Source: Fimbriosthenelais zetlandica
Taxonomy: Eukaryota
Reading direction: 5' to 3'
DNA: 64,000 nucleotides
Assembly: GCA_977030845.1 (NCBI GenBank)
Contig: OZ365113.1
Coordinates: 30,566,001 to 30,630,000, forward strand
This document shows, in pieces, positions 42,361 through 57,400 of the stretch. The first letter of the stretch is position 1, and each line of letters begins with the position of its first letter. The notes under the pieces were generated by a model that saw only the letters and a list, made by a program, of their open reading frames with translations, had not been told where the DNA came from and did not search any database. Both the position numbers and the translations under genes were made by a program.

Positions 42361-42460
42361 CCGCCATCTTGAATCACGCAAAATCACGCCTAGGACGAGA
42401 ATCAGCGAGATTAAATCACCTCGTCACGTGACCTGAAATAAGTAGGTAATATGGCGGCGG
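42361..42460 (+). promoter_or_regulatory. CpG-rich Raf proximal promoter with YY1-like and E-box/CLEAR sites
   Basis: CCGCCATCTT at 42361-42370, the palindrome GTCACGTGAC at 42423-42432 and AATATGGCGGC overlapping the start codon. Confidence 0.5.
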
Positions 42461-45400
42461 TTAAACCAGCTACTTCAATGAACGGAGACATTCAATTTTC
42501 CATAGGTACCGAAGTCAACGAAGATGACGCTTTTGAACCTGCTACGCTTCAAGATGAGGTAATATTCTGCCTTTATGCTGTTTTTTACGGGTCGACGATC
42601 CGATTTTCGTACCGATCCGAGACCAAATTGTCATGTTTATCAGGCCCCTGACGTCCCTGGCCTTGGCGAAACCTCGATGCCTTGATAGAAAAAAATCCTT
42701 GTCTACTCCACCCTTAACGATTGGGATTAAGGTGGACGGTTCTTTTCATTTGCACATCCAGTTGGCTTTGTCTCTTTGCGTAGCTAAGAATTTTTCCATG
42801 GATTGCTTAGTGGCATTTGCATTTTAGAAGCAGGGTATTGCTGCACAAACCATCTCAGTGTTAACTCTCCTCCCACGCGGCGGCCATTTTGAATCGAAAA
42901 CGAGGCTAGTGACGCATAGCGGCGGATGACGGAGGCTTCCGGTCTTCCCGCGCGTAGGTCCTCACCGTGCCATCAACCATGTCAACCTGGACGAAAAATT
43001 TAAGTTCTTTACCTTCTGTTACACACTCTTTTATTGAGAAATGGGCGAGCGAGGACGAGGTGGTGCCCAGGCAGGCACTGAAGCGGGGCTACGCCTTTTT
43101 TTCTGGGTCCTATATCCATGATGTTGAAGGTAAGTTCATAATTTATGAGCGATAATATAAGTAGTTGCCACCCACGCCACTGTTTACAACAAGGCAATGT
43201 CAAACAAAAAAGAGGGAAATTATGGGAACATCCTGAATTAGGAATACTTCTCTGATATAACTGATGTTCTAGATATAAAAGTGAGTAGATAGAGCTCCCT
43301 TTTAAAAATATATTATCAAATAGATAGGCAATAGTAGCACATTTCATGAGACGTTTCAGGAGAGGCGAAGTCGGCCCATTATTCCAAGATTCAGCATTTG
43401 ATTTCATTTGGTTGGGTGATGCTAGCATATTATTAGTACACCATAACTAGGCTTGCACATAACAAATAATAAGCTAGCCTATAAAAAGCTAGTATGTAAT
43501 ATGCTTGCCTTAGGCTTAATGGCAACCCTCCTAAGATAGGGTGGGCTCTTAAGCTAGATAAAATATGCGTGTTCGCCCAGGGTAAGGAGCCGATCATACT
43601 GTCTACTTCTAAGCAACACTTAGGCTAACTTCACATAGTCGTAGGCTGACCTATAACTATGAACCCAAATCCTGAAATAGGCTGGAACTGGGATATAATT
43701 ATCCCTGAAACCATGAATAGGTGTGCCTATAAAATGTGAGCCCATTAAATGTTATGGTGTCATTAAGCCTAAGCCCCCTAACCCTAACCCTATAATACAT
43801 GTACATTTAATATATAATATGCTCGCGTGACCCAACCAAATCTTAGGCTGGCCACTAGATTAATCAATGACCCTATTACTAATTAGACCTATAATTATAG
43901 TGGTTGTAAGTTTAAATTTAAAAAGCAAACGATTTTCCAGTCTGAGGTTGTCTTCATATAGTTGTCAGTAATTATTCATTTAGCCCAATAGCTCCAAATA
44001 ATGAGTCATTACCCGGATCTTATATTCACTATTCAGTGAAGACAGGCAGTCCTGTCGCTGTCCGGGCTAAATGCTACCCCTCCATGAAAAAAAATGCAGA
44101 ACCAAAACAACTGGAGGTAAAACCTGTAATAAACCTGTATTCAGATTCAGCATTCAATTGTTATGTTTCTTTAAATAATATGGCTGGAGGGACGCAAACA
44201 TTTGTGTTTATTATCATTTTTGTTACTGCACTGTTCTATATTATAAAGTTATAATTAAAAGGCTCCCGTTGGGCTGATAGGAATTAACCTATTGAATTAC
44301 TTTTTTGGGAATTAATAACTAATGTCTGTTGCTACATAGTAGGCATGATTGATTTATGAAAGAAAATTATCGGATATTTAAATTTATTGGATTTAGAATA
44401 AAGTGAACTATGTTAATCTAAGTTGCCCTATGGAATGCATGGAATTTTTCTTAATAAATAATTTTTATATAATCTTTTTTTCCACATTCAGTTGGAATTC
44501 AGTGGGAACATCACATGCCGATGCTCCTGTACAGCAGGGAAAGGAGTTTGTAACCATGTGGTCGCACTCCTCTACCAACTGGCGCACTACCAGAGCCTGG
44601 GACTAAAGGTGGTTCCTCCCATCGTGTCAAAAACATCCACCCCTCAGCAGTGGCACATCCCTCCTCGGACCCACGGTGTTAAGCCAAGTACCATTTCAGA
44701 CCTGACCGTTGTTAAGGTGAAGCCCCCTTCTACAGATGCCCCAAAAGCTGCGAAGAAAAGGACTGTAACAGGTGAGAATGAGTATTTATAAAGAAATATT
44801 ATATGATACCCCCTGTATAATTCACAATAATTGCTTAAAGCTCATAGACAATCGGGCATGGGACTGGTGTTTGGGGCAAGGGTTCTATCACCAATGGAGG
44901 TCAAATCCTTCATCTTTCACACCTGTCCCAACTGATCTGTCTTATCTAATACCGCAAATCAGAAAATAATAAATAAATGATTACTTTGGTTATTTCAATA
45001 TAGCAACTACAGTACTATGGTAACCTGAACCATGATCAAATATAAACTTTTCCTCAAGATAATGTATATGGAGTCCCTCGTAAAAGTATAATTTGTATGT
45101 CCTTTCCTCCCCTACGCCCTACATATATAAGCCTAATTAGAAATTATTTAAAGATTCAATATATAATTATTGATTACAAAACAATAATTACTTTACTACG
45201 TATTTTTATCTATTACCACAGGAATCACGTCTACCCTCTACAACCCCGTCCGTGTCCCTATTTATAGTGCCACCAGGGACTTTGCTACTAGTCTCTCCCG
45301 TTTTACTTCCCAGTGCCAACAACCACAAATTTTTCAAGTGCTTCCTGACACCTGGCCTGCTGCCGTTCCGAGTCTGGTAGGCCCAGTGCCATCAGGCTCA

Positions 45401-48400
45401 ACCCTTGCCCATCAGCAGCAGCAGACTGGAAGCTCCGAAAAGTGCCCCCTACATGTAGATGCACCAAGTCGACCACCCTGCCCAAGACCAGTCCTGTACA
45501 TGTCCTATGACATCGCTTCCCTCCCTGATGACGTTAAATCAATATATGAAGGACTTGCCTGCACACTCACTGATTCATCCGATTACGAAATTTTGACTCG
45601 CCAACAAAGTGATTGTCCCGAGTGGAAAAAACTGCGGGAATCACGGGTAACATCTTCTAAATTTAAACAAATTTGTAGCCGACGAGCAGACTTTAAAACA
45701 CTGGCACAAAGGCTCATCACTGGAAAGACTCTCCAAACTAGTGCAATGAAACGAGGATTGGAACTGGAACCTCGGGCTGCGGAGGTTTACGCTGACAATA
45801 AGAGGGTTAATGTGTACAAAATTGGGTTTGTTATAAATCCGTCTGCACATCATTTGGGGTGCTCTCCCGATCGTCTGGTCTATGATCCGTCTCTCACTGA
45901 TAACCAAAAGTGGGGACTCCTTGAAATAAAGTGTCCGGTGAACAGCACATACAAAGAGTGCAAATATCTCAAACAAGGGCGAAATGGGGAGTTCTCTTTG
46001 AAACACACGCATGATTATTATTACCAAATTATGGGCCAACTGGGAATCACAGGTTTCAGCTGGTGTGACTTCATGATTTTCTGTGAAGATGATTTTCTTA
46101 TCGAGAAGATTAATTTTGATGAAGTTTTCTTTGCAAATATGAAACAGAATCTAGATAGATTTTATTTTGAACATTTCTTGCCATGTTTGCTATCGATAAA
46201 AAAATGAAATATGCAGTATGTTAACTATGTACAGGGTTGGTACATTTCCAGCAAATACAAATTTCATGAATTTTTAATGATTCTTACGGACGTACGTACC
46301 CTGGATGTATTCCTCATATTAATATCTGTCAGCACTTGGTGGCATGCTTAGCAGCTAGGATTAGGTATAGGCAGGTCATGTACTGCTCATGAATACACAC
46401 TTTTTCTCTAGTATTATGTATGAATAGGCAGTTCTTCTGCTCGAGTTCTTATGGTGGCGTTTATGGAGTAATACAGACTAAAAACAGGTCCTTGACATAA
46501 CTTTTTCTACTTAGAAAATAAACGAGCTGAAAGCACTTCCATAATCTATATGAAATTTGTTTTTATTTAAAATAAAAGCACTCTTTTCAATCAATTAAGA
46601 AGATTTTATGAAGACTGTCAATATATTAATTGTAAATGAAAATACCACCATCTACCCTGAATTGATCCATAGTCTGATTTATGGTATCTATCCTGAAGAA
46701 TAAAGTTATCTTAAAATAACCTCATTTTACCTGTACATTAATATGCAGTAATACAGCACATTAATAAATCTCGAATCAGATATTATTTTATGGAGTCTAT
46801 CACTTACACTTTAAATGTGTCTGTCTGACTAACCAAGTTTATATTATCAGACGCTGATATCTATATATACATACATCTAAACTAATTCCAATGCTGATGA
46901 ATACTGGTGAGGTTGTATATTTATCTGGGAAACACGTCTGTAGGAAGTGTAACTTTTATGAACAGGGTTCCCGCGCGGCATTAAAATGTCTTAAATTGGT
47001 TGTGAAAAATTTAAGGCCTTAAAAAGTATTAAATTTTGGCCTTTTTGGTCTAAAAAGTCTTAAATTTGTTGACGTCACTTCCGACGATATTACTAACGAT
47101 TTTTCAATGATTTAACTGGCAATTTTGTCGACTATCCACTGTCAGAAAGTGTGTAATTTAGGTCTTAAAAACGAAGATCATAGGTCTTAAAAAGTCTTAA
47201 AAAAGTCTTAAATTTCTCCAAACCGCGGGAACCCTGATGAAGCTCTGCCAGTTCAGTTTATTAAGTAAATAGATACTTAGGATAGGAGTTGTTACAAAAG
47301 GGCATAATCTATAATTTGAAAATAAAGGCCTTAAATATAAAGTCATGTTCTAACATTTGCTAAATAAAACCATATAAAGTGCAACAAGGGAAGTTTATTG
47401 TTAACAATCGTACTTGTGGACATTTGAGAAGTTTTGAGAACATGTTTTAGTATATCAAATATGGTTTATTGTACAACTATATGGAATGAAAAGCGCTGAG
47501 GAGATTTGACTATATAGATGACTAAATACAGGTCCTTGACATAACATTTTCTACTTAGAAAATAAACGAGCTGAAAGCACTTCCATAATCTATATAAAAT
47601 TTGTTTTTATTTAAAATGAAAGCACTCTCTTTCAATCAATTAAGAAGATTTTATGAAGACTGCCCAAAATACCATGTTCTATTTCTCAGTCCAAATTTTT
47701 CCATATCAAAAACTATTCCATGATGTTGTTGAGTACCCTCTCTATTATTTCTGGAATATATACATGATTGTGTAATGATTAGGCCAAACAAAAAATACCT
47801 GTGTTTGGGGTTTTCCGACCAACCCTAAAAAAAATCAATGTTTTCTAGATTTTATTCATTTTTTTGACAAAAACAAAATTCTAAAGCATCGACTGTATTC
47901 TGAATAATTGAAATCTCCGCTTTCCTTAAATTTTATCTCAATGAGAATCTGAACCAAAATAAAAAAATGTTGGCCTAAATTGGGAGATTTCCCTCCATCG
48001 GCTGGGTTTTCCCCAAAAGTGACCAACGTCACTGTTGTGGGCTGTTTCATGACAAAAAAGTACATGTTACTTGTATACTAAACTACCGGATTGATCAGTA
48101 AAAAATGACTTTTAAAGATATTTTTTAAAAATTTAATTCAGCCGACCCATGGTTTTTCAGAATAAAATCGTAAAATAATAATAAAAAAAAATAGTGCCGA
48201 CCTACCGGCTGAAAAGTTTTTTCATGTTATCCCAAACAAAGGTATTTTTTATTTGGCCTTATATTATAATAGTTTGTTATCGTAAAGGTTAATATCAATA
48301 GTTAAGTTCACTCGTTGTTCAATATACCATTAGCTTTACTCTTTATTCTACCCTCAATGTTCTACCATATCGCATGATGCTCATACATACATTCACCTGT

Positions 48401-51400
48401 TAATTATACCACAAAACCAACAGAAGGAGGACTTAGCCCTCAGTCTCACTCCAATAACCAAACGCAATAATTCTTTTCTATAATAGGCTATAACTCCAGT
48501 AGTTCCTTAAAAAAACCCTGGTATATATGAGCTAGGTACTAACAATGGTATATGGACCAGACTATATGATTCTAAAGTCGCAAATATGGATTTTGGGTTA
48601 GTTACAATTCTTATAGATAACATTGATATGGCACATTGAAAAATATTTGTATTTTTAATACATTTTATGCCTAAATGATTCCACCAGAGTGATAATTGAC
48701 TGATTGGGTCTGTGCAAATTTAGAAAAGAGGGCCCCTGAAGTTAGTGAGTAAAGCACATACTGTCCATATTTGATTTACAGTCCCCGCCAGGCTTAGTGG
48801 TATTATACTATCGAAAATGTGATACTCCTTTACCCTTCTAATTGCTCTTTCTACATGGATCCTCACCCTGGCAATATTTTGCGTTTGTTGGACCTCTCTT
48901 CGTTCAAACTGAGAACGTTTTCCAGTCAGAAAAGGTGGTATTGTCAGATTGGCACTTTTTTCGGCTAAAAGATCTTGTATGGTGAAGCCTTTGTCTGCCA
49001 TGACACAGTCCATTGGATCCAAAAGTTCTGTGATGCCACTTCGTTTAGTGATCTCGACGTCAGAAATACTTCCCGTGTATAACTGGCTTATGAATGAGAC
49101 AGCTCCGGAGGGTGTGATGCCGATCAAGCCCTTGAATGTTGTATTTCCTTTATAGTGGGAGTAGAGCTGGCTATTTAAATAAAGTGCTGATGGTGTCTGA
49201 CACTTTATTTCCGTACAGTCTATTATCACTCTGGTGGAGGGATAACTGTCTTTGAAGCATTGAGGCATGTGTCTATCGATTTTTTCACGAGATGGCCAAA
49301 TTGGTAAGCCTCCTAACAGGTGGTACAGATAGTTAGCCCATGTGATGATGACCCGACTCACTGTCGACAAGCTTACATTGAACCTTTCAGCCAAGTCTTT
49401 CTCAAAGTGGCCTGCCTTGCAGCGACACATAAATAAGAAGAACTGATCTATGGTCGACAGCTCTTCATGCTTGAAGACGTCTCTCGTGTTCAGTGCAGCA
49501 CCTGACCTTTGTCTTTGTATTTGTGACCAAGTGATGAGCTTATCTGCCGTTGGTTGTAATGCTAGGAACGTTGCGAGGAACATGTCATAGGATCTAAATC
49601 CTGTGTAGAAAGCTATCATGTCATTATCTGTGGTGAAACGGTTGATACCAAACTTTAGAGATTTCAGCTGACTATTTTCCTCCTCTAACAGAGAGATGTG
49701 TTCCAGGGCAGCTTTCAATTGATCCTCAAGTGACAAGTCTATACGTTCTGTGTAGTCATGGTCTTGAGGTCCTTCACAGATGAAGCCTTCATTTGTTTCA
49801 CTGAAAGAATAATAATTTATTTATATTATAAACATTTTACATATGAGGACATTTGGTCAGTCCAGTTTACATTATTGATGGGCGAACATATTGAAATTAA
49901 TGTAGTCCCACAAAATCTTTCCATCATAAATTACATCCCTAACTTATACATGATATTTTCTTCTGACACTCTGAAGATAATCATACGATGTAAATTACTG
50001 TTAAACATGTAGCTCTCAATTATATGACAATTAAGTGGATGGGGATAGAAATGACCTAAAAGTATGATTATAAACAATAATTTATATTTATTTATATTCA
50101 ACTATAATATGAATAGTGATGGATACTATCTCAAGTCACCTTTCTTGTGGGTATTCCACTGGGACGTCGTCATCAGTCGATACACTGGCTGCTGCTCGCT
50201 CCCGTGGCGGTTTCCTGCTTGTTTTTTCTTTTGCCCATGGAAATTTATGAGGGACTGCTCCTTTAATAAGGTGACGCTTGCCACACAAACTTCTCAAAAT
50301 CTCTTTCCCTTCGAAGTGCAGTGAGCACACTTTGGTTGAAGCAGTGATCTAATAAATAGAGAAATCCACACATTTATAAAATTGCTATTGATAACTATTT
50401 CTATTCAATCAATATTAAATATTTACTTATTTCACCTGATATATTTGGAAATTAAAACCGGTCCATATTACTTTCCAGTAATCACCCTTTAATTGCTTGT
50501 AATGGCCTAATATAGTAATGGCCTACATAAATTATTTCAAGGCCAAATAACATCACTGTTCTCTAAGCAAGTTGATGTACTCAAATGGTTAATCATCCAA
50601 TTCTGTACCCCCAGTTGCAGTTCGCTCCCCCAAAGAAAATGATAAATAAACATAGCCATAGGAAAAAAAACACACAGAGAAAAACCCCCTTTCCCTCTGA
50701 TCCTAGCCTATATAATTATGATCAGCCCATGCCTGGATAGAAATGTTTACCCTCATCCCCTGATCCTGTAGGCCTATAATTATCAATCAAAACCACTTAG
50801 GCCTAATATTATTAGCCTGAAATTTAGGCTAAATCATTAAATTTATGCCCTAATGATTACGGCGATTTTCACTTCAGGTTATAACAATTTTAATAAAATA
50901 ATTTCGCATTAAATCTGGAATTTGCCTTGGCATTACATTCATACGACACTATTTATCTATTAGCATTACGATCTATACCACTAATTCAACCCACTTGGTT
51001 TAGCCTAACTTGGACTTGGACAGGGAAATAATGTTACCAAAGTTGTGACAGCAATCTAATACTAATAGGGCCTATCTAGCGTTAGCTCTAGAGACTATGA
51101 TATTAATGATCACTCCTCATTGACAGTGACACTCAGTGGAAGTGACACCAAAGATTCTACTATATAGTAGAATCTTTGGTGACACTGTCAATGTCAGACA
51201 GTCAGTATAGCCAAGCTTACTGCAATGCCAACTTTATATTGCGCCATGGTATGCCCTAATACAACCAAATGCACCAGAATTTTCAAATTTATCGTTTTCA
51301 AGATTAACATTCTGTTTTTTATATTTTTTATCATTGAAGCTTAGCCTTAGGCTTAGAATGATCAATGTGAAACATTTGCTCGATGACACCAACAAATATT

Positions 51401-54400
51401 GCGCAGCTCTCATAGGCTAGTGTGCTGGGGACAACCAAATAAAAGCAAAAACTAACCTGAAAGTTACACCCAGGGTCTCTTCTGACGGCGTGAATCCATT
51501 CTTGCCTCCTCTTCTGATCTTTTGGTATAGCATGGAAACTTACTTCACTGTATTTTTCGTATCGCGAGTCACTTTTGCACAGCGGTACACAACAGTGATC
51601 ATGCCGGCCGTCCATGCTTCCCGCCGCGCGCTGTCACGTCATTGTCAGTGACGACACTGCTGCTATGCGTCACTAGCCTCGTTTTGGATACGTAATGACG
51701 TCAGCGCGAGAAGGGTGTATTGCGATCTGTCTCTTTCTCCCACACTCACTGTCACCTATTTGACAGTTCCAATATTTTCATCTCAGACAGTTTTCATTCG
51801 ATAATTTCCACATCCCTTTACACCCTTTCTTTGATGCAAGGTGTTCTCAGTCCATTCTCGTTGATATAAGTAAAAAGCATCGTTTTGTTTAGTTCCATCT
51901 ATGGTGGATCTTTTGGAGGGTTGACAGTCCTCAGTCAGTGCTGGCCCCCGGGTGCTGCACTGCTGGCCTGTGACAGACTGTGAGATTGTTGTGTATTAGG
52001 AGACTTTGTTATTAGTAGGCCTACTAAATTACTAATAGTAGGCCTACTGTTTTATCTAAGACTCACTGGTACAGCCAATTGTTACATTGTCAATTTTAAT
52101 GCAACCCCTTAAATAAACCGGTATTAAACCTACGCCTTGATTCGTTCAATCTTGGTATTGTGGGACTTACAATTTGTCTATTAAATGACTAATAATTATT
52201 ATAAATGGCCTTAAATTATTAACTATATATTTGGCCTACGCCGCTAAAAGATTTCATATAATTCCTGTCTGTGATCTACAGTATGGTGCATAGCTATATT
52301 AGTATAAGAAAACATAAATGACTCCAAAAATTTCATCAGTTTCATCCAGTTTGACAGACTGAATGCAATCATCAGGTGATTCATGTAGGTAACTTTTGTT
52401 ATGGCATCACCCCACATTCTACTCATGCAGTACCGTAGGCTACCATGCCATGCCGGCCCCGTCCATGCCATGGTTCTAGATCTTTGTTCTTCATCCATGA
52501 GATAGGCCTATCCTGAACAATCAACGATGCTATTTTTCAGACCTAATTTTTTCGAAAAAAAAAAAACATCCAATTCATCGAGGTCGGTGGGAGTAGAATT
52601 TTTAACCATTTGCAGCCAGCATGAGAAGGGAAAGATAAGGATAACTTATCTTGGGGACTTACTCCAATATTGAATAATTATTAGCTTCTGTTATTATATG
52701 TTTTCTAGGATTAGATTAGGACCTCCATCCTATGTCGTGCTGAACTTATCAACAGCCCCCCCCCCCCCCCCCGCAAATAATACTAATTTATAAATTTCGC
52801 TCTGTGGCGAGCTTATAAACCCTCTTCAAAATCCCTTTGCTAAACAGTTTCACGGAGGTTCTAAAATGATCATTTGTATTGTGGACTATAATGCCGAGTT
52901 TTTCAATTGATATCAATTGTAACAACATTGGGAATGGAAATATGATCACTATTAAAACATAGATCTTGAATGTTATGAATGTCATATTTTTAGTTGATTG
53001 TGGCTTGCTCTTTGAGTGCTTTCTGAATATTTCTTTCAAGAATGAACTAAATCCCTAGAGTTAGCTTTGTAGGCACTTTTAACGCCTTTATGAGAATTAA
53101 CCAAAATATTTCCATTTTCAGTACCTATACTTGAAAGCTCAAAAGTGAAACGTACCTTTAATTATTTACTTGCTTCTGGACATAGACTATGATAGAGTAA
53201 AATGGAAAATCCAATCATGGAATAAATTTTATTCAACCACTGTTATTCACTTAGGCCTACGGTCCCTAAAACATCGTAATCTCTATTGTCTACCAGAGAG
53301 TCAACTATTCAGAATAAGTTTGACCTGATGTACTGCTAAACTTTAAATTTAACTTAACTATAAATTTACACCACAAGTTATATTCTCCTGGAAAAATATT
53401 TGAGACAGCTCACATTATATTGCAAAAGAATTTTACTGATGCCCCTCTGTAACAACACCTTCCAGTCAGTCTTCGCGAATCATTTCGGTTATTATTAAGT
53501 AAAAAAAAAAATACGAATGACCGGGAAAGTGATCAGCAGTCGATTATTGTGACTGCCTGCTTTTAGTAAAAGAAAAATAGAAGATTTATTCCAAACATCT
53601 TTGAAGCCATTTAATACTTATTTCATTCATTCACCGAAAAGTATAGATTGTTGTTCGAGTCCTTAAACGGACACCATATTCATGTAGTAGGAATCGAAAA
53701 GAAATCTAGTTGAAATTAAGAAATCCAGTACAAATTGTCAATGACCGGTAAACTTTGCCTTGTATAATATTGGTCGTTATGACCGTTTTAAAATTTTTCT
53801 CAAACTTGAGTCAAAGACTGCCTTCAAGTTATCTTGCCAGGGGAACACTATAAGGAAACTTTTTTGCTGATTGGCAACAGCTCTGTTGTGATAGTGCTTT
53901 TTAAGGTATAAACACGTCTTTGGATTTTAGTGAATATATAATATTTATCAATATTTGTTGCTAATAACTGAATGTCATTAATATGTATTTGGTTCAAAGC
54001 TAATGTGGCTTCATTGAATTAACAATATAACCAATTTATTTTGCGGACATAAAAATTTAAGACCACAATCTCATCAACACACTTGCATCAGAGACGACTA
54101 ATTATAGGAAAACTTTATAAATTGTTGAAATCTATATTTAGACACAAGAATTAAAGTTTTTTTGTTTCTCTTGCTGTTTCCATCCCTATAGGTGGCACTA
54201 GCTCGGTAACCTCCTGCTATTTGGCCAACGTGTTGTGACTCAGCATTAGTTGTAGTGACAGTGGCTGCCGCATGCTAAAACATATATATGTACCCCCCCC
54301 CCCCCCACCTCCTATAAGAGTGTCTACATGTAGCCCCCCCCCCCCCCCCCCCCTCGCCTACCACCCCCTTACACACTCCCCACACAGACATAACTATAGC

Positions 54401-57400
54401 AGCCCATCCATCCCATGTGTATATATATACTACAGTACACACTTATAGTTATACCCCCTCCCCTTTTAAAGCTTCGTTCCTTTAGTCAACTTTAAGCTTC
54501 CCCTCCTCAGTATAGGGACAAACCTATGGTGTCAACCACGGACATTGCCAGACACCATAGATTTACCCATTCAGTACTTAATATCTGATACATATTTAAA
54601 CGTGCCCGTGTGTGAACTGAGGATATGGGCTGATACACATATATGTCAATGGATACCGGATTACGGAGATAGAACTTACTTGTTAGATATCTTCTACTTA
54701 CTCACCATGCACTGCACAACAGGATCATGTACATACATATCCACTCTCGTTTAAAAACTGGAAAGCACAACAAGGACTACTATTTAAAGAGAGCGTTTGT
54801 GTCTTGGCTCTTGTTATATTATAAGTAGGCCTCAATTTAAGACTGAGTCTGGAGACTGTTTCCCCCCATGAGAATAAGAGGCCCATAGATAGTAAATAAA
54901 GATGAAAGTGGATAGGTCAAGGAATCAAGCCAAACGCCACTCAGCTGGCAGTGAGAGAACGAGACGGGGTAGATTGAAGTCCACCCTGTGCATGAAAAGA
55001 ATGGAAGAGTTGCGCTCACAGCGTATTCAGGTCAGTGTGCAATGAGCCAGCCACCAAATTTCTCAATAAAACAACAAAAATATACAAAGAATTGCTTCTC
55101 TAACCACGACCAAAATCACTACCAAAAACGAATCAGTTCATACCAGCTTGTTTGGTATATACACCTGTACTAAATGCTATACTAATGGCTCCATTGCATA
55201 CGCTTCAATAATCGCATCATTTGCCAAAAAAAGCTTTTTGCCTGAATACTGGTACAAGAAATGATGCTGCCATCACTACTTACTAACTGTCAAATTATTG
55301 GGCTTTGGCGCTTAAACGCTGGTGACAGATTAACAACTTAACATAGCTCTGACCTCCTGTCATTTGCAAACCTGTCCCTGCCCTAAAAATGGGAAATCCC
55401 CCCCCCCCCCACCCTTAATTCCCCCTCTCCAAATTCCCTTAATTTCCAAGAAAATTGTTCCCTAAACAATTAGGCTTTTCCCTTGATTGGTAGTTTTTCG
55501 TTACAGCTGGTACAAAAAGGTTGAATAGCAGAACTTTTGAAATTAGATTTTTCCCCCTGAAATTTGGACATTTTTTTTTATATAAATATTTGGCACTATT
55601 TTTGTTTCTTGCGTAATACTTACAGACAATAACTATGTATCTAGAGATTTGTGTCAACTTATTGCACCAAAATTTGTCACCGTCCCAACCAACCAACGCT
55701 CGTAATGACAGGGCTAAGACCTTGCAAATAGGAGATGCATCCAATCTTCTACTAACACTCATCGGGCTCACAAGGGAAGTAATTATTCAATGATTGAAAA
55801 CGAAGATTCTAAATGACGACCGAAATATTAATTAGTGTTACTGTGTAGATCTTTAAGATTTGTCCTGACTTGATTCCCAAGATTTTTTTTTTTTTAAATA
55901 ATTTCAAAAATTTAATTAATATATTTTTGGGAACTGATAAGCATATAATATTATATGTTTATCAGGTCCCATAAAATGTAATCAAAGTTTTAAAACTATC
56001 CTCAAATTATAAAATATATGCATCACTCCAATATTCAGTTATAAATAAGAATGTCAGTGCTTAGTGAAGAATGGTATTTTGGGGATGAGCCCATAAGAGC
56101 TTGCATGCCCATTAGTACTTAAATCTTCATTTCAGTCATGCAGTTCTTGCTGTGGGACATTCTTAATTCCATTGATTGTTTCACGTGTAGCAGATTTTAC
56201 AATTTATTTATATGCCACATCTCACTCTAAAAAATAAATATTTAATTTCAGTTTGAAGTTTGTAAATAAAGTGTTTTATGTTAATTTTGTCAGGACATGA
56301 TTTATACATCTCATTTTCTAAATATAATTTATTTTTTGAGTTCAGATAGGATTCATTGATATTGACTCGCATCATCCGCATTCTTGTTTTCACACATCTG
56401 CTTTAAATACTATGAAAAAAGTTCTCCCCTCCACACTCCTTATTTCCTCACTTCAAAGAAAGATTTTATTTGATGTATATAAAATGGAATACCCTGTATA
56501 TTTGGGTTCGCAGTGTTGAGGTAACTTTTAGTTTTAAATTTATTCTTAATTTGAATTTGATTACAGTGAAGTCTCACTTAAGGACTACCTCACTAAATCG
56601 ACCATATCACAAGTCGACCATTAAATTGTCAGAAGGAAATTAATTAGAGATGGCCAGAACCAAAACTTTTCACATTAGACATACTATCTTTGAGACTATT
56701 AGTTCACTCACTAGGGTGCTTCCATGTAGTGGGACACCACTGTATGTCCTGTTATTAAATTCATATTTATAGTGTGATGCTATGATATAATAGGAACTAG
56801 TGATGATAGACTACCTTATAAATAGAACTAGTGCAATATCTCCCGATGAGTAATCACATGCTCGTTCCATAGTATGCTGTTCAGACTTATGTCATCTCTT
56901 ATGAATCTGATGATCCATGAGTGACAGTTTTCCTTGACCCTGATATAAAATTTGAACTTTTGTAAATTGTTTTTTCTTTCAGATTCGTAATATTCAGAAT
57001 GTGATTCGGCTGACGAAGGAGAATCTGGAGGCATTGAATGCCAAGTTCGGGACCCACCAGCACCCTCCTTCTATGTACCTACAGGTGGGCGAAAATCTTA
57101 AATAATATAAGTTATTTTTATTTGGTTTAGAATTATTATTGAGCCATGTGATTAGTGAAAATACCAGCTCACACTCTTGATGTCACTGACTCTCTTTTTC
57201 ATGTATGATTTACAGCTGGGGGGCTCTTTCTAAGTGCTTTTCTACTGCCTTTTGTGCAATGGATATTTCTCAGGTATAAGTGCTTTATACAAAACACTAC
57301 ATCCTGAGGAGGAAGGCAGTAAAAATGCCTTGGACAGTTCAAATGGGGGATTGAACCGCCAACCCGTCGATCATTGGTCAAACCCCTAAGAAGGAAGGCA

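Follow-up and report, generated by a model that had tools for sequence, protein, structure and literature searches.

Does a transposon that carries a nuclease gene beside its transposase gene put that nuclease to use in its own movement? The question is raised by a stretch of the Fimbriosthenelais zetlandica genome (contig OZ365113.1, forward-strand positions 30,566,001 to 30,630,000; the whole analysed stretch of 64,000 nucleotides is called the window, and positions are counted from its first letter), in which an 8,855-bp element of the ISL2EU type occupies 42864-51718, within the first intron of a B-Raf-like host gene, and pairs a DDE transposase with a SWIM-YqaJ nuclease. ISL2EU transposons encode a transposase with THAP, helix-turn-helix (HTH) and DDE domains together with a second open reading frame (ORF) containing a YqaJ exonuclease domain, and produce an AT duplication at A/AT/T (PMC4482050). 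What the second protein contributes has been unsettled for as long as the group has been known. The extra ORFs are listed as having no known function (PMC4482050), and searches of the later literature yielded no ISL2EU transposition assay or nuclease study, in agreement with a first-pass annotation of this DNA, which held that the role of the nuclease had not been shown experimentally. The same annotation presented the locus as a candidate uncharacterised system. This overstated its novelty, as the architecture was published years ago and ISL2EU, which is found in animals only and has inverted repeats of 6-259 bp, counted 12 potentially active families by 2015 (PMC4482050; PMC4122938; PMC9179366). 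The window element is a new, very young member of ISL2EU, not a new system.

Ends, copies and age of the element

The element is delimited by a pair of terminal inverted repeats (TIRs), both present as the first-pass annotation had claimed:

42864-42923, + strand: left TIR, starting ACTCTCC..., one arm of the inverted pair; the similarity of five other copies begins exactly at 42864.
51659-51718, - strand: right TIR, the other arm of the inverted pair; the similarity of the copies stops exactly at 51718.

These repeats are 60 nt long and imperfect (77% complementary, with an identical inner 24 nt), and a perfect TGACGTCA palindrome lies inside the right one at 51696-51703. Six full copies of the element were found in the genome (447 Mb), on three contigs. 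Similarity between the window copy and all five others begins and ends at these same two positions and the flanks are unrelated, which marks the copies as the outcome of transpositions and not of segmental duplications. Any two of the six differ by 0.03-0.29% across about 8.8 kb, the variable sites numbering 46 in total, and the terminal 200 bp at either end are 99-100% identical. The transposase frame is open in all six copies; the nuclease frame is open in four, covered only in part in one, and interrupted by R424* in one (contig C27). Coding sequence makes up 33% of the element and contains 12 of the 46 variable sites (about 6 replacement, 6 silent), so that a comparison of coding with non-coding differences gave no clear sign of selection on individual copies.

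Six near-identical copies at different sites point to recent transposition, and the element is very probably a young, structurally complete ISL2EU-type transposon. The suggestion of the first-pass annotation that this is a potentially active copy is borne out by six copies that are 99.7-99.97% identical, with every transposase frame open; copy number and divergence were among the checks that it had proposed, and one outcome that it named as fatal, a single, old, fixed and domesticated copy, is excluded by the same data. The related idea that the two genes are domesticated host genes derived from a transposon is refuted by the copy data and has become vanishingly improbable, given multiple near-identical copies with inverted repeats and unrelated flanks, one of them with a nonsense mutation.

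The insertion sites are less uniform. An AT/AT target duplication was observed at three of the five resolved copies. The joined flanks of the window copy read TTAATT, that is, an AATT target without a duplication, and this copy looks inserted without duplication, as happens with the related Spy elements. With copies that diverge by only 0.03-0.3%, mismatched flanks are unlikely to stem from point mutation. Inversion by recombination with an oppositely oriented copy on the same contig was considered as their source and rejected, since Raf exons 1 and 2 keep their collinear order on either side of the element and a swap would make just one of the two flank pairs match. As a speculation, trimming of the target overhang by the nuclease would be compatible with young copies that have no duplication.

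Several observations count against a recently mobile ISL2EU element. The window copy is flanked by TA on the left (42858-42863) and AT on the right (51719-51724), not by AT/AT, and copy L033 is flanked by CC/TA, likewise without an AT/AT duplication. The TIRs begin with AC, not with the GG that is usual, though not required, in ISL2EU. No short derivatives sharing both ends were found in the genome search, copy number is low, and the assembly holds no empty site or second haplotype, both 600-bp flanks being unique. The splicing of both element genes, finally, was read from sequence only.

An alternative is that the family is no longer mobile, its six copies being relics of one recent burst, silenced or invisibly defective, and the window copy inert. 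In favour of this count the small number of copies (six full copies and a seventh, degraded one on contig C39) and the peculiarities of the window copy, which alone has V44 in its THAP domain where the other five copies have I, and which combines this private residue with a 37-bp intron insertion and a non-canonical target duplication. Such an immobile family nevertheless appears rather unlikely, as it sits poorly with divergence down to 0.03%, with transposase frames that are all open and with termini that are 99-100% identical over 200 bp.

Three copies carry additional sequence. The 37-bp insertion private to the window copy, in transposase intron 1 (51134-51193), creates a 34-nt palindrome; copy L032 is longer by 730 bp at about 46565, and copy L034 by 268 bp at about 49944.

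Two convergent genes and their products

Splice models joined at GT-AG sites only gave two convergent genes with uninterrupted frames, a predicted nuclease gene of four exons on the + strand (498 aa) and a predicted transposase gene of three exons on the - strand (482 aa). The lengths given by the first-pass annotation were thereby reproduced, and the pair matches the published ISL2EU architecture (PMC4482050), as the annotation had recognised. The modelled exons are as follows:

42979-43129, + strand: nuclease exon 1, ATG 116 bp inside the left end of the element; SWIM domain, N-terminal part.
44037-44116, + strand: nuclease exon 2, SWIM-domain beta strands; AG/GT borders.
44492-44771, + strand: nuclease exon 3, SWIM zinc finger C88, C90, C97, H99; conserved KTSxPQxWHxP motif.
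45222-46207, + strand: nuclease exon 4, conserved linker, then the YqaJ/lambda-exonuclease domain (residues ~270-498).
51457-51615, - strand: transposase exon 1, ATG 104 bp inside the right end of the element; THAP zinc finger, first half.
50140-50348, - strand: transposase exon 2, second half of the THAP finger including an AVPHKF motif; acidic linker.
48720-49800, - strand: transposase exon 3, coiled-coil-like stretch, HTH_Tnp_4 and the DDE_Tnp_4 catalytic core.

As the start codons lie some 110 bp inside the element at each end (104 bp for the transposase at the right, 116 bp for the nuclease at the left), the element ends probably double as promoters of both genes.

Pfam searches with the transposase returned DDE_Tnp_4 (E 6.6e-42), HTH_Tnp_4 (E 5.6e-11) and THAP (E 6.3e-10, split over exons 1 and 2), and those with the nuclease protein YqaJ (E 1.8e-22) and SWIM (E 5.7e-4). 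The catalytic motifs, which the annotation had called complete, are present and invariant among homologues: the transposase triad D317, D392 and E440 (D173, D248 and E296 in the exon-3 product) across 30 sequences, and the nuclease active-site residues E353, P386-D387, E405 and K407, which form the E, PD and ExK motifs, across 28. The C, C, C and H ligands of the SWIM finger are invariant across 19 sequences.

Compared with PDB by sequence, the C-terminal domain of the nuclease protein matched LHK-Exo (3syy, E 1.9e-11). For fold comparison, the AlphaFold model of a 47%-identical homologue with the same architecture (P0014) was used, which has a mean predicted local distance difference test score (pLDDT) of 77.7 and exceeds 90 over most of the nuclease domain. 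Its fold matches LHK-Exo and lambda exonuclease with E values of 7e-9 to 2e-6 (best 3sz4, template modelling score 0.74 by target), a match obtained on the homologue and not on a model of the window protein. Judged from its sequence, the C-terminal domain is a PD-(D/E)XK nuclease of the lambda-exonuclease/YqaJ type with a complete active site. The N-terminal residues 20-125 are modelled as a SWIM domain like those of ZSWIM4/5/6/8 and bacterial helicase-associated SWIM proteins; a fold search of PDB with this domain returned nothing at E <= 0.001 (best, ZSWIM8 chains at E 0.02), and the AlphaFold Swiss-Prot library gave ZSWIM4 at E 3.9e-4. The linker between the two domains has low confidence in the model and contains two strikingly conserved short motifs, STLYNP and G-S-x-L-S/A-Y/H-Q-Q. 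In the window protein the conserved linker comprises residues 172-235 (45224-45415), and the second motif reads GSTLAHQQ.

The ORF list of the window holds no further long ORF within the element beyond the two genes, and no gene for a single-strand annealing protein of the Red-beta/RecT/YqaK type inside it. The spacer of about 2.5 kb between the two genes contains a direct repeat and a nested small repeat element:

46476-47662, + strand: spacer segment with a 143-bp direct repeat at its borders (46476-46617 and 47520-47662, 96.5% identical).
47778-48262, no strand assigned: nested inverted-repeat element of ~485 bp, like a miniature inverted-repeat transposable element (MITE), an inverted pair with 32-nt arms at 91%.

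The MITE-like element occurs in all six full copies. Genome-wide, a first look gave 431 candidates, and 40 scored matches lie at 80-100% identity; it is a separate, unrelated and abundant family that has hitch-hiked with the ISL2EU family.

Predicted docking of the nuclease protein on the transposase

Complex prediction was carried out for one pair, the nuclease exon-4 product (linker and nuclease, 327 aa) with the transposase exon-3 product (338 aa), leaving out the SWIM domain and the THAP exons and using no alignment input. The interaction prediction score from aligned errors (ipSAE) was 0.86, 0.86 and 0.87 in three runs, against 0.00 for the best control of both kinds; the runs share at least 94% of contacts, and the pLDDT of the partners is at least 83. 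On the nuclease side, every predicted contact falls within residues 1-64 of the exon-4 product, the linker (172-235 in full-length numbering), and the model shows the nuclease domain free of contact with the transposase. On the other side, they involve residues 48-73, 131-156, 208-218, 233-238 and 318-337 of the exon-3 product. Conservation is higher among the contacting linker residues (0.46) than in the remaining linker (0.34; permutation p 0.001). Because the transposase has no relative in PDB by sequence, recall of a solved complex is an unlikely source of the result.

Two points temper this prediction. The docking score is the model's own confidence and concerns a probably disordered linker, a class outside those on which the tool was tested; and conservation at the transposase interface does not exceed that of the protein's other residues (0.68 vs 0.67). 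Taken together, the model suggests that the conserved linker of the nuclease protein docks on the transposase core and thus tethers the nuclease, a proposal on which we regard the scales as evenly balanced.

If this docking were a false positive, the nuclease would work without binding the transposase, for instance on host repair intermediates or other DNA. In the calibration of the tool, 51 of 78 solved complexes reached the mark, as did 2 of 108 mismatched pairs and 7 of 44 neighbouring genes taken blind; these last two figures lend the alternative some credit, together with the position of disordered chains outside the tested classes and an interface on the transposase that shows no extra conservation. 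The false passes, however, scored 0.34-0.59, far below the docking score obtained here, both kinds of control gave 0.00, and the linker makes its contacts at the only motifs that it conserves, its sequence being variable elsewhere. An unbound nuclease is accordingly a reading we doubt somewhat, while giving it real weight.

Relatives of the gene pair

Of the roughly 120 scored matches to the transposase in this genome, at least 74 are accompanied by a YqaJ match no more than about 5 kb away, and the paired genes lie in convergent, divergent or tandem arrangement. The genome contains dozens of diverged ISL2EU-like families with 30-66% protein identity to the window family, and about six distinct families with both genes were recognised among the loci whose sequence was compared. 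Several of the diverged families have multiple identical-scoring copies with open frames. Outside this genome, a contig from a fish of the cod family carries the same convergent gene pair, and database relatives come from corals, molluscs, fishes, amphioxus and a tick, the nearest sharing the THAP and DDE_Tnp_4 architecture. The best named transposase match in the protein collection is only 67% identical, so the window family is not contained in that collection. The transposase core is 57-62% identical to proteins of fish, bivalve, gastropod, coral and amphioxus, a level that varies unusually little between phyla, for which strong constraint or horizontal transfer may be responsible.

Co-divergence of transposase and nuclease was estimated from identities to the query. 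The Pearson coefficient of 0.69 is driven by the nearest families and the Spearman coefficient is 0.28 (p 0.055), and this measure was not used as evidence of co-evolution.

Two further observations were made among the relatives. Ten identical-scoring DDE_Tnp_4 matches (C19:7967074, C1:39586508, C11:33100817 and seven more) have 40% identity to the window transposase and open frames of 289 aa, without a nearby YqaJ match; they may represent a one-protein relative or one with a Myb partner, of the Spy or Harbinger type. In a 58%-identical sister family (L013 2532-3125), short repeats in a long tandem array take up the spacer between the convergent genes.

Host gene context

The element begins 305 bp past the donor of exon 1 of the B-Raf-like gene and fills 61% of its first intron (14,424 bp), in line with the roughly 305 bp and 60% of the first-pass annotation. 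Two host exons border this intron:

42451-42558, + strand: putative host exon 1, with donor GT at 42559 and an in-frame join to exon 2.
56983-57084, + strand: host exon 2, 34 codons, resembling the B-Raf-specific region (IRNIQNVIRLTKENLEALNAKFG...).

The opening residues of a Raf-type Ras-binding domain (RBD; start near 63.57 kb) are encoded at the end of a further exon, near 63.2-63.6 kb, and the remainder of the domain was found 4.9 kb beyond the window on the same strand (PF02196, E 2.3e-11). A Pfam search of the host exons within the window gave no match, and the Raf assignment is made because of the RBD match just past the window and the peptide motifs. The host gene thus appears to be B-Raf-like, with exon 1 and the splicing assigned from the nucleotide sequence.

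The nuclease gene (42979-46207) has the same orientation as Raf, which places three acceptors and three donors 0.4-2.7 kb past exon 1. An 8.9-kb element with same-strand splice sites near Raf exon 1 could disturb Raf transcripts, and chimeric or prematurely terminated transcripts are conceivable.

Proposed mechanism

The THAP zinc finger and HTH of the transposase would recognise DNA at the element ends, and the DDE_Tnp_4 core would cut the element out and join it at AT dinucleotides; recognition of the ends by a THAP-HTH-DDE protein and cut-and-paste at AT are established for the family. The linker of the second protein (172-235, with STLYNP and GSTLAHQQ) would wrap onto the transposase core, leaving the nuclease tethered by a flexible stretch of about 50 residues. 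From there the nuclease may act on the 5' strands of DNA ends that transposition creates, whether those of the donor break or those of the element. One option is resection of the donor break, so that homologous repair would be favoured and the donor copy restored; another is processing of 5' strands of the element or target that would be needed for excision. Coupling of 5'-strand processing by the nuclease to transposition is a tentative proposal, which we hold possible without favouring it.

In a stronger version, the nuclease would be to the transposase what TnsA is to TnsB, a genuine subunit of a heteromeric enzyme: 3' strands would be cut by the DDE protein and 5' strands cut or removed by the PD-(D/E)XK protein, so that excision would fail without the nuclease. 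Such a subunit would fit the tight docking predicted between the nuclease protein and the DDE core, as well as the retention of the gene pair in many diverged families and across phyla, and Tn7 TnsA/TnsB is a generally known precedent. KolobokE elements, moreover, fuse both activities (PMC9587614). On the other hand, the fold and motifs are those of lambda-type 5'-3' exonucleases and not of TnsA-type endonucleases, the predicted contact is made through the linker only and not by the nuclease domain, and related Spy elements are described as transposing with a single protein (PMC11304231). That the SWIM-YqaJ protein forms part of a heteromeric eukaryotic transposase as a docked subunit, its tethered nuclease performing an essential 5'-strand step in excision or integration, is improbable.

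The prediction that the linker docks on the transposase core narrows the question of the nuclease to two short motifs and three catalytic residues. Copies with 0.03-0.3% divergence and open frames are natural material for direct tests, and the window copy is one substrate among several for testing the ISL2EU nuclease. If true, a transposase-tethered exonuclease that steers break processing would be of interest to builders of transposon gene-transfer tools.

Comparison with known systems

Within the PHIS or Harbinger-like superfamily, the window element has the gene pair and the animal host of ISL2EU (Han et al. 2015, PMC4482050; Han et al. 2014, PMC4122938), and its assignment to that group is based on architecture. 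Its 60-nt repeats fall within the range of 6-259 bp and most resolved copies show the AT duplication, although two of the five resolved young copies, including the window copy, have no AT/AT duplication. At 8.9 kb it is longer than the ISL2EU average of about 4.8 kb because of its introns and the nested small element.

PIF/Harbinger elements have a related DDE_Tnp_4 transposase, and the window pair likewise has a predicted transposase-binding partner. In work on Harbinger3_DR, a second element-encoded protein is reportedly needed alongside the transposase. The same need is stated for the PIF/Harbinger transposase in a preprint (bioRxiv 10.64898/2026.05.26.728016). The PIF/Harbinger partner, however, is not an enzyme but a DNA-binding protein of the Myb/SANT or MADF kind, whereas that of the window element is a nuclease; the target duplication is TWA there and AT in the window family, whose transposase has its own THAP domain. 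Neither of the strict marks of PIF/Harbinger, a Myb/SANT or MADF second ORF and a TWA duplication, was found in the window element.

With lambda exonuclease, LHK-Exo and YqaJ, the window nuclease shares sequence, fold and the E, PD and ExK residues. It differs from them in an added N-terminal SWIM domain and long conserved linker and in having no annealing partner gene; the adjacent annealing protein gene that defines a phage two-component recombinase is absent from the element. In KolobokE, a lambda-exonuclease-like nuclease is fused downstream of the transposase in one protein (PMC9587614). These elements likewise join a DDD/E transposase with a lambda-exonuclease-like PD-(D/E)XK nuclease, but they belong to an unrelated superfamily and make a fused protein, unlike the two separate genes of the window element.

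In bacterial Tn7, the DDE protein TnsB works with TnsA, a PD-(D/E)XK nuclease that handles the 5' strands. The pairing of DDE and PD-(D/E)XK proteins in the window element resembles TnsA-TnsB by analogy, although TnsA is a restriction-endonuclease-like endonuclease and the window nuclease a lambda-type exonuclease. Were the SWIM-YqaJ protein a docked subunit after all, it would provide a eukaryotic counterpart of Tn7 TnsA/TnsB.

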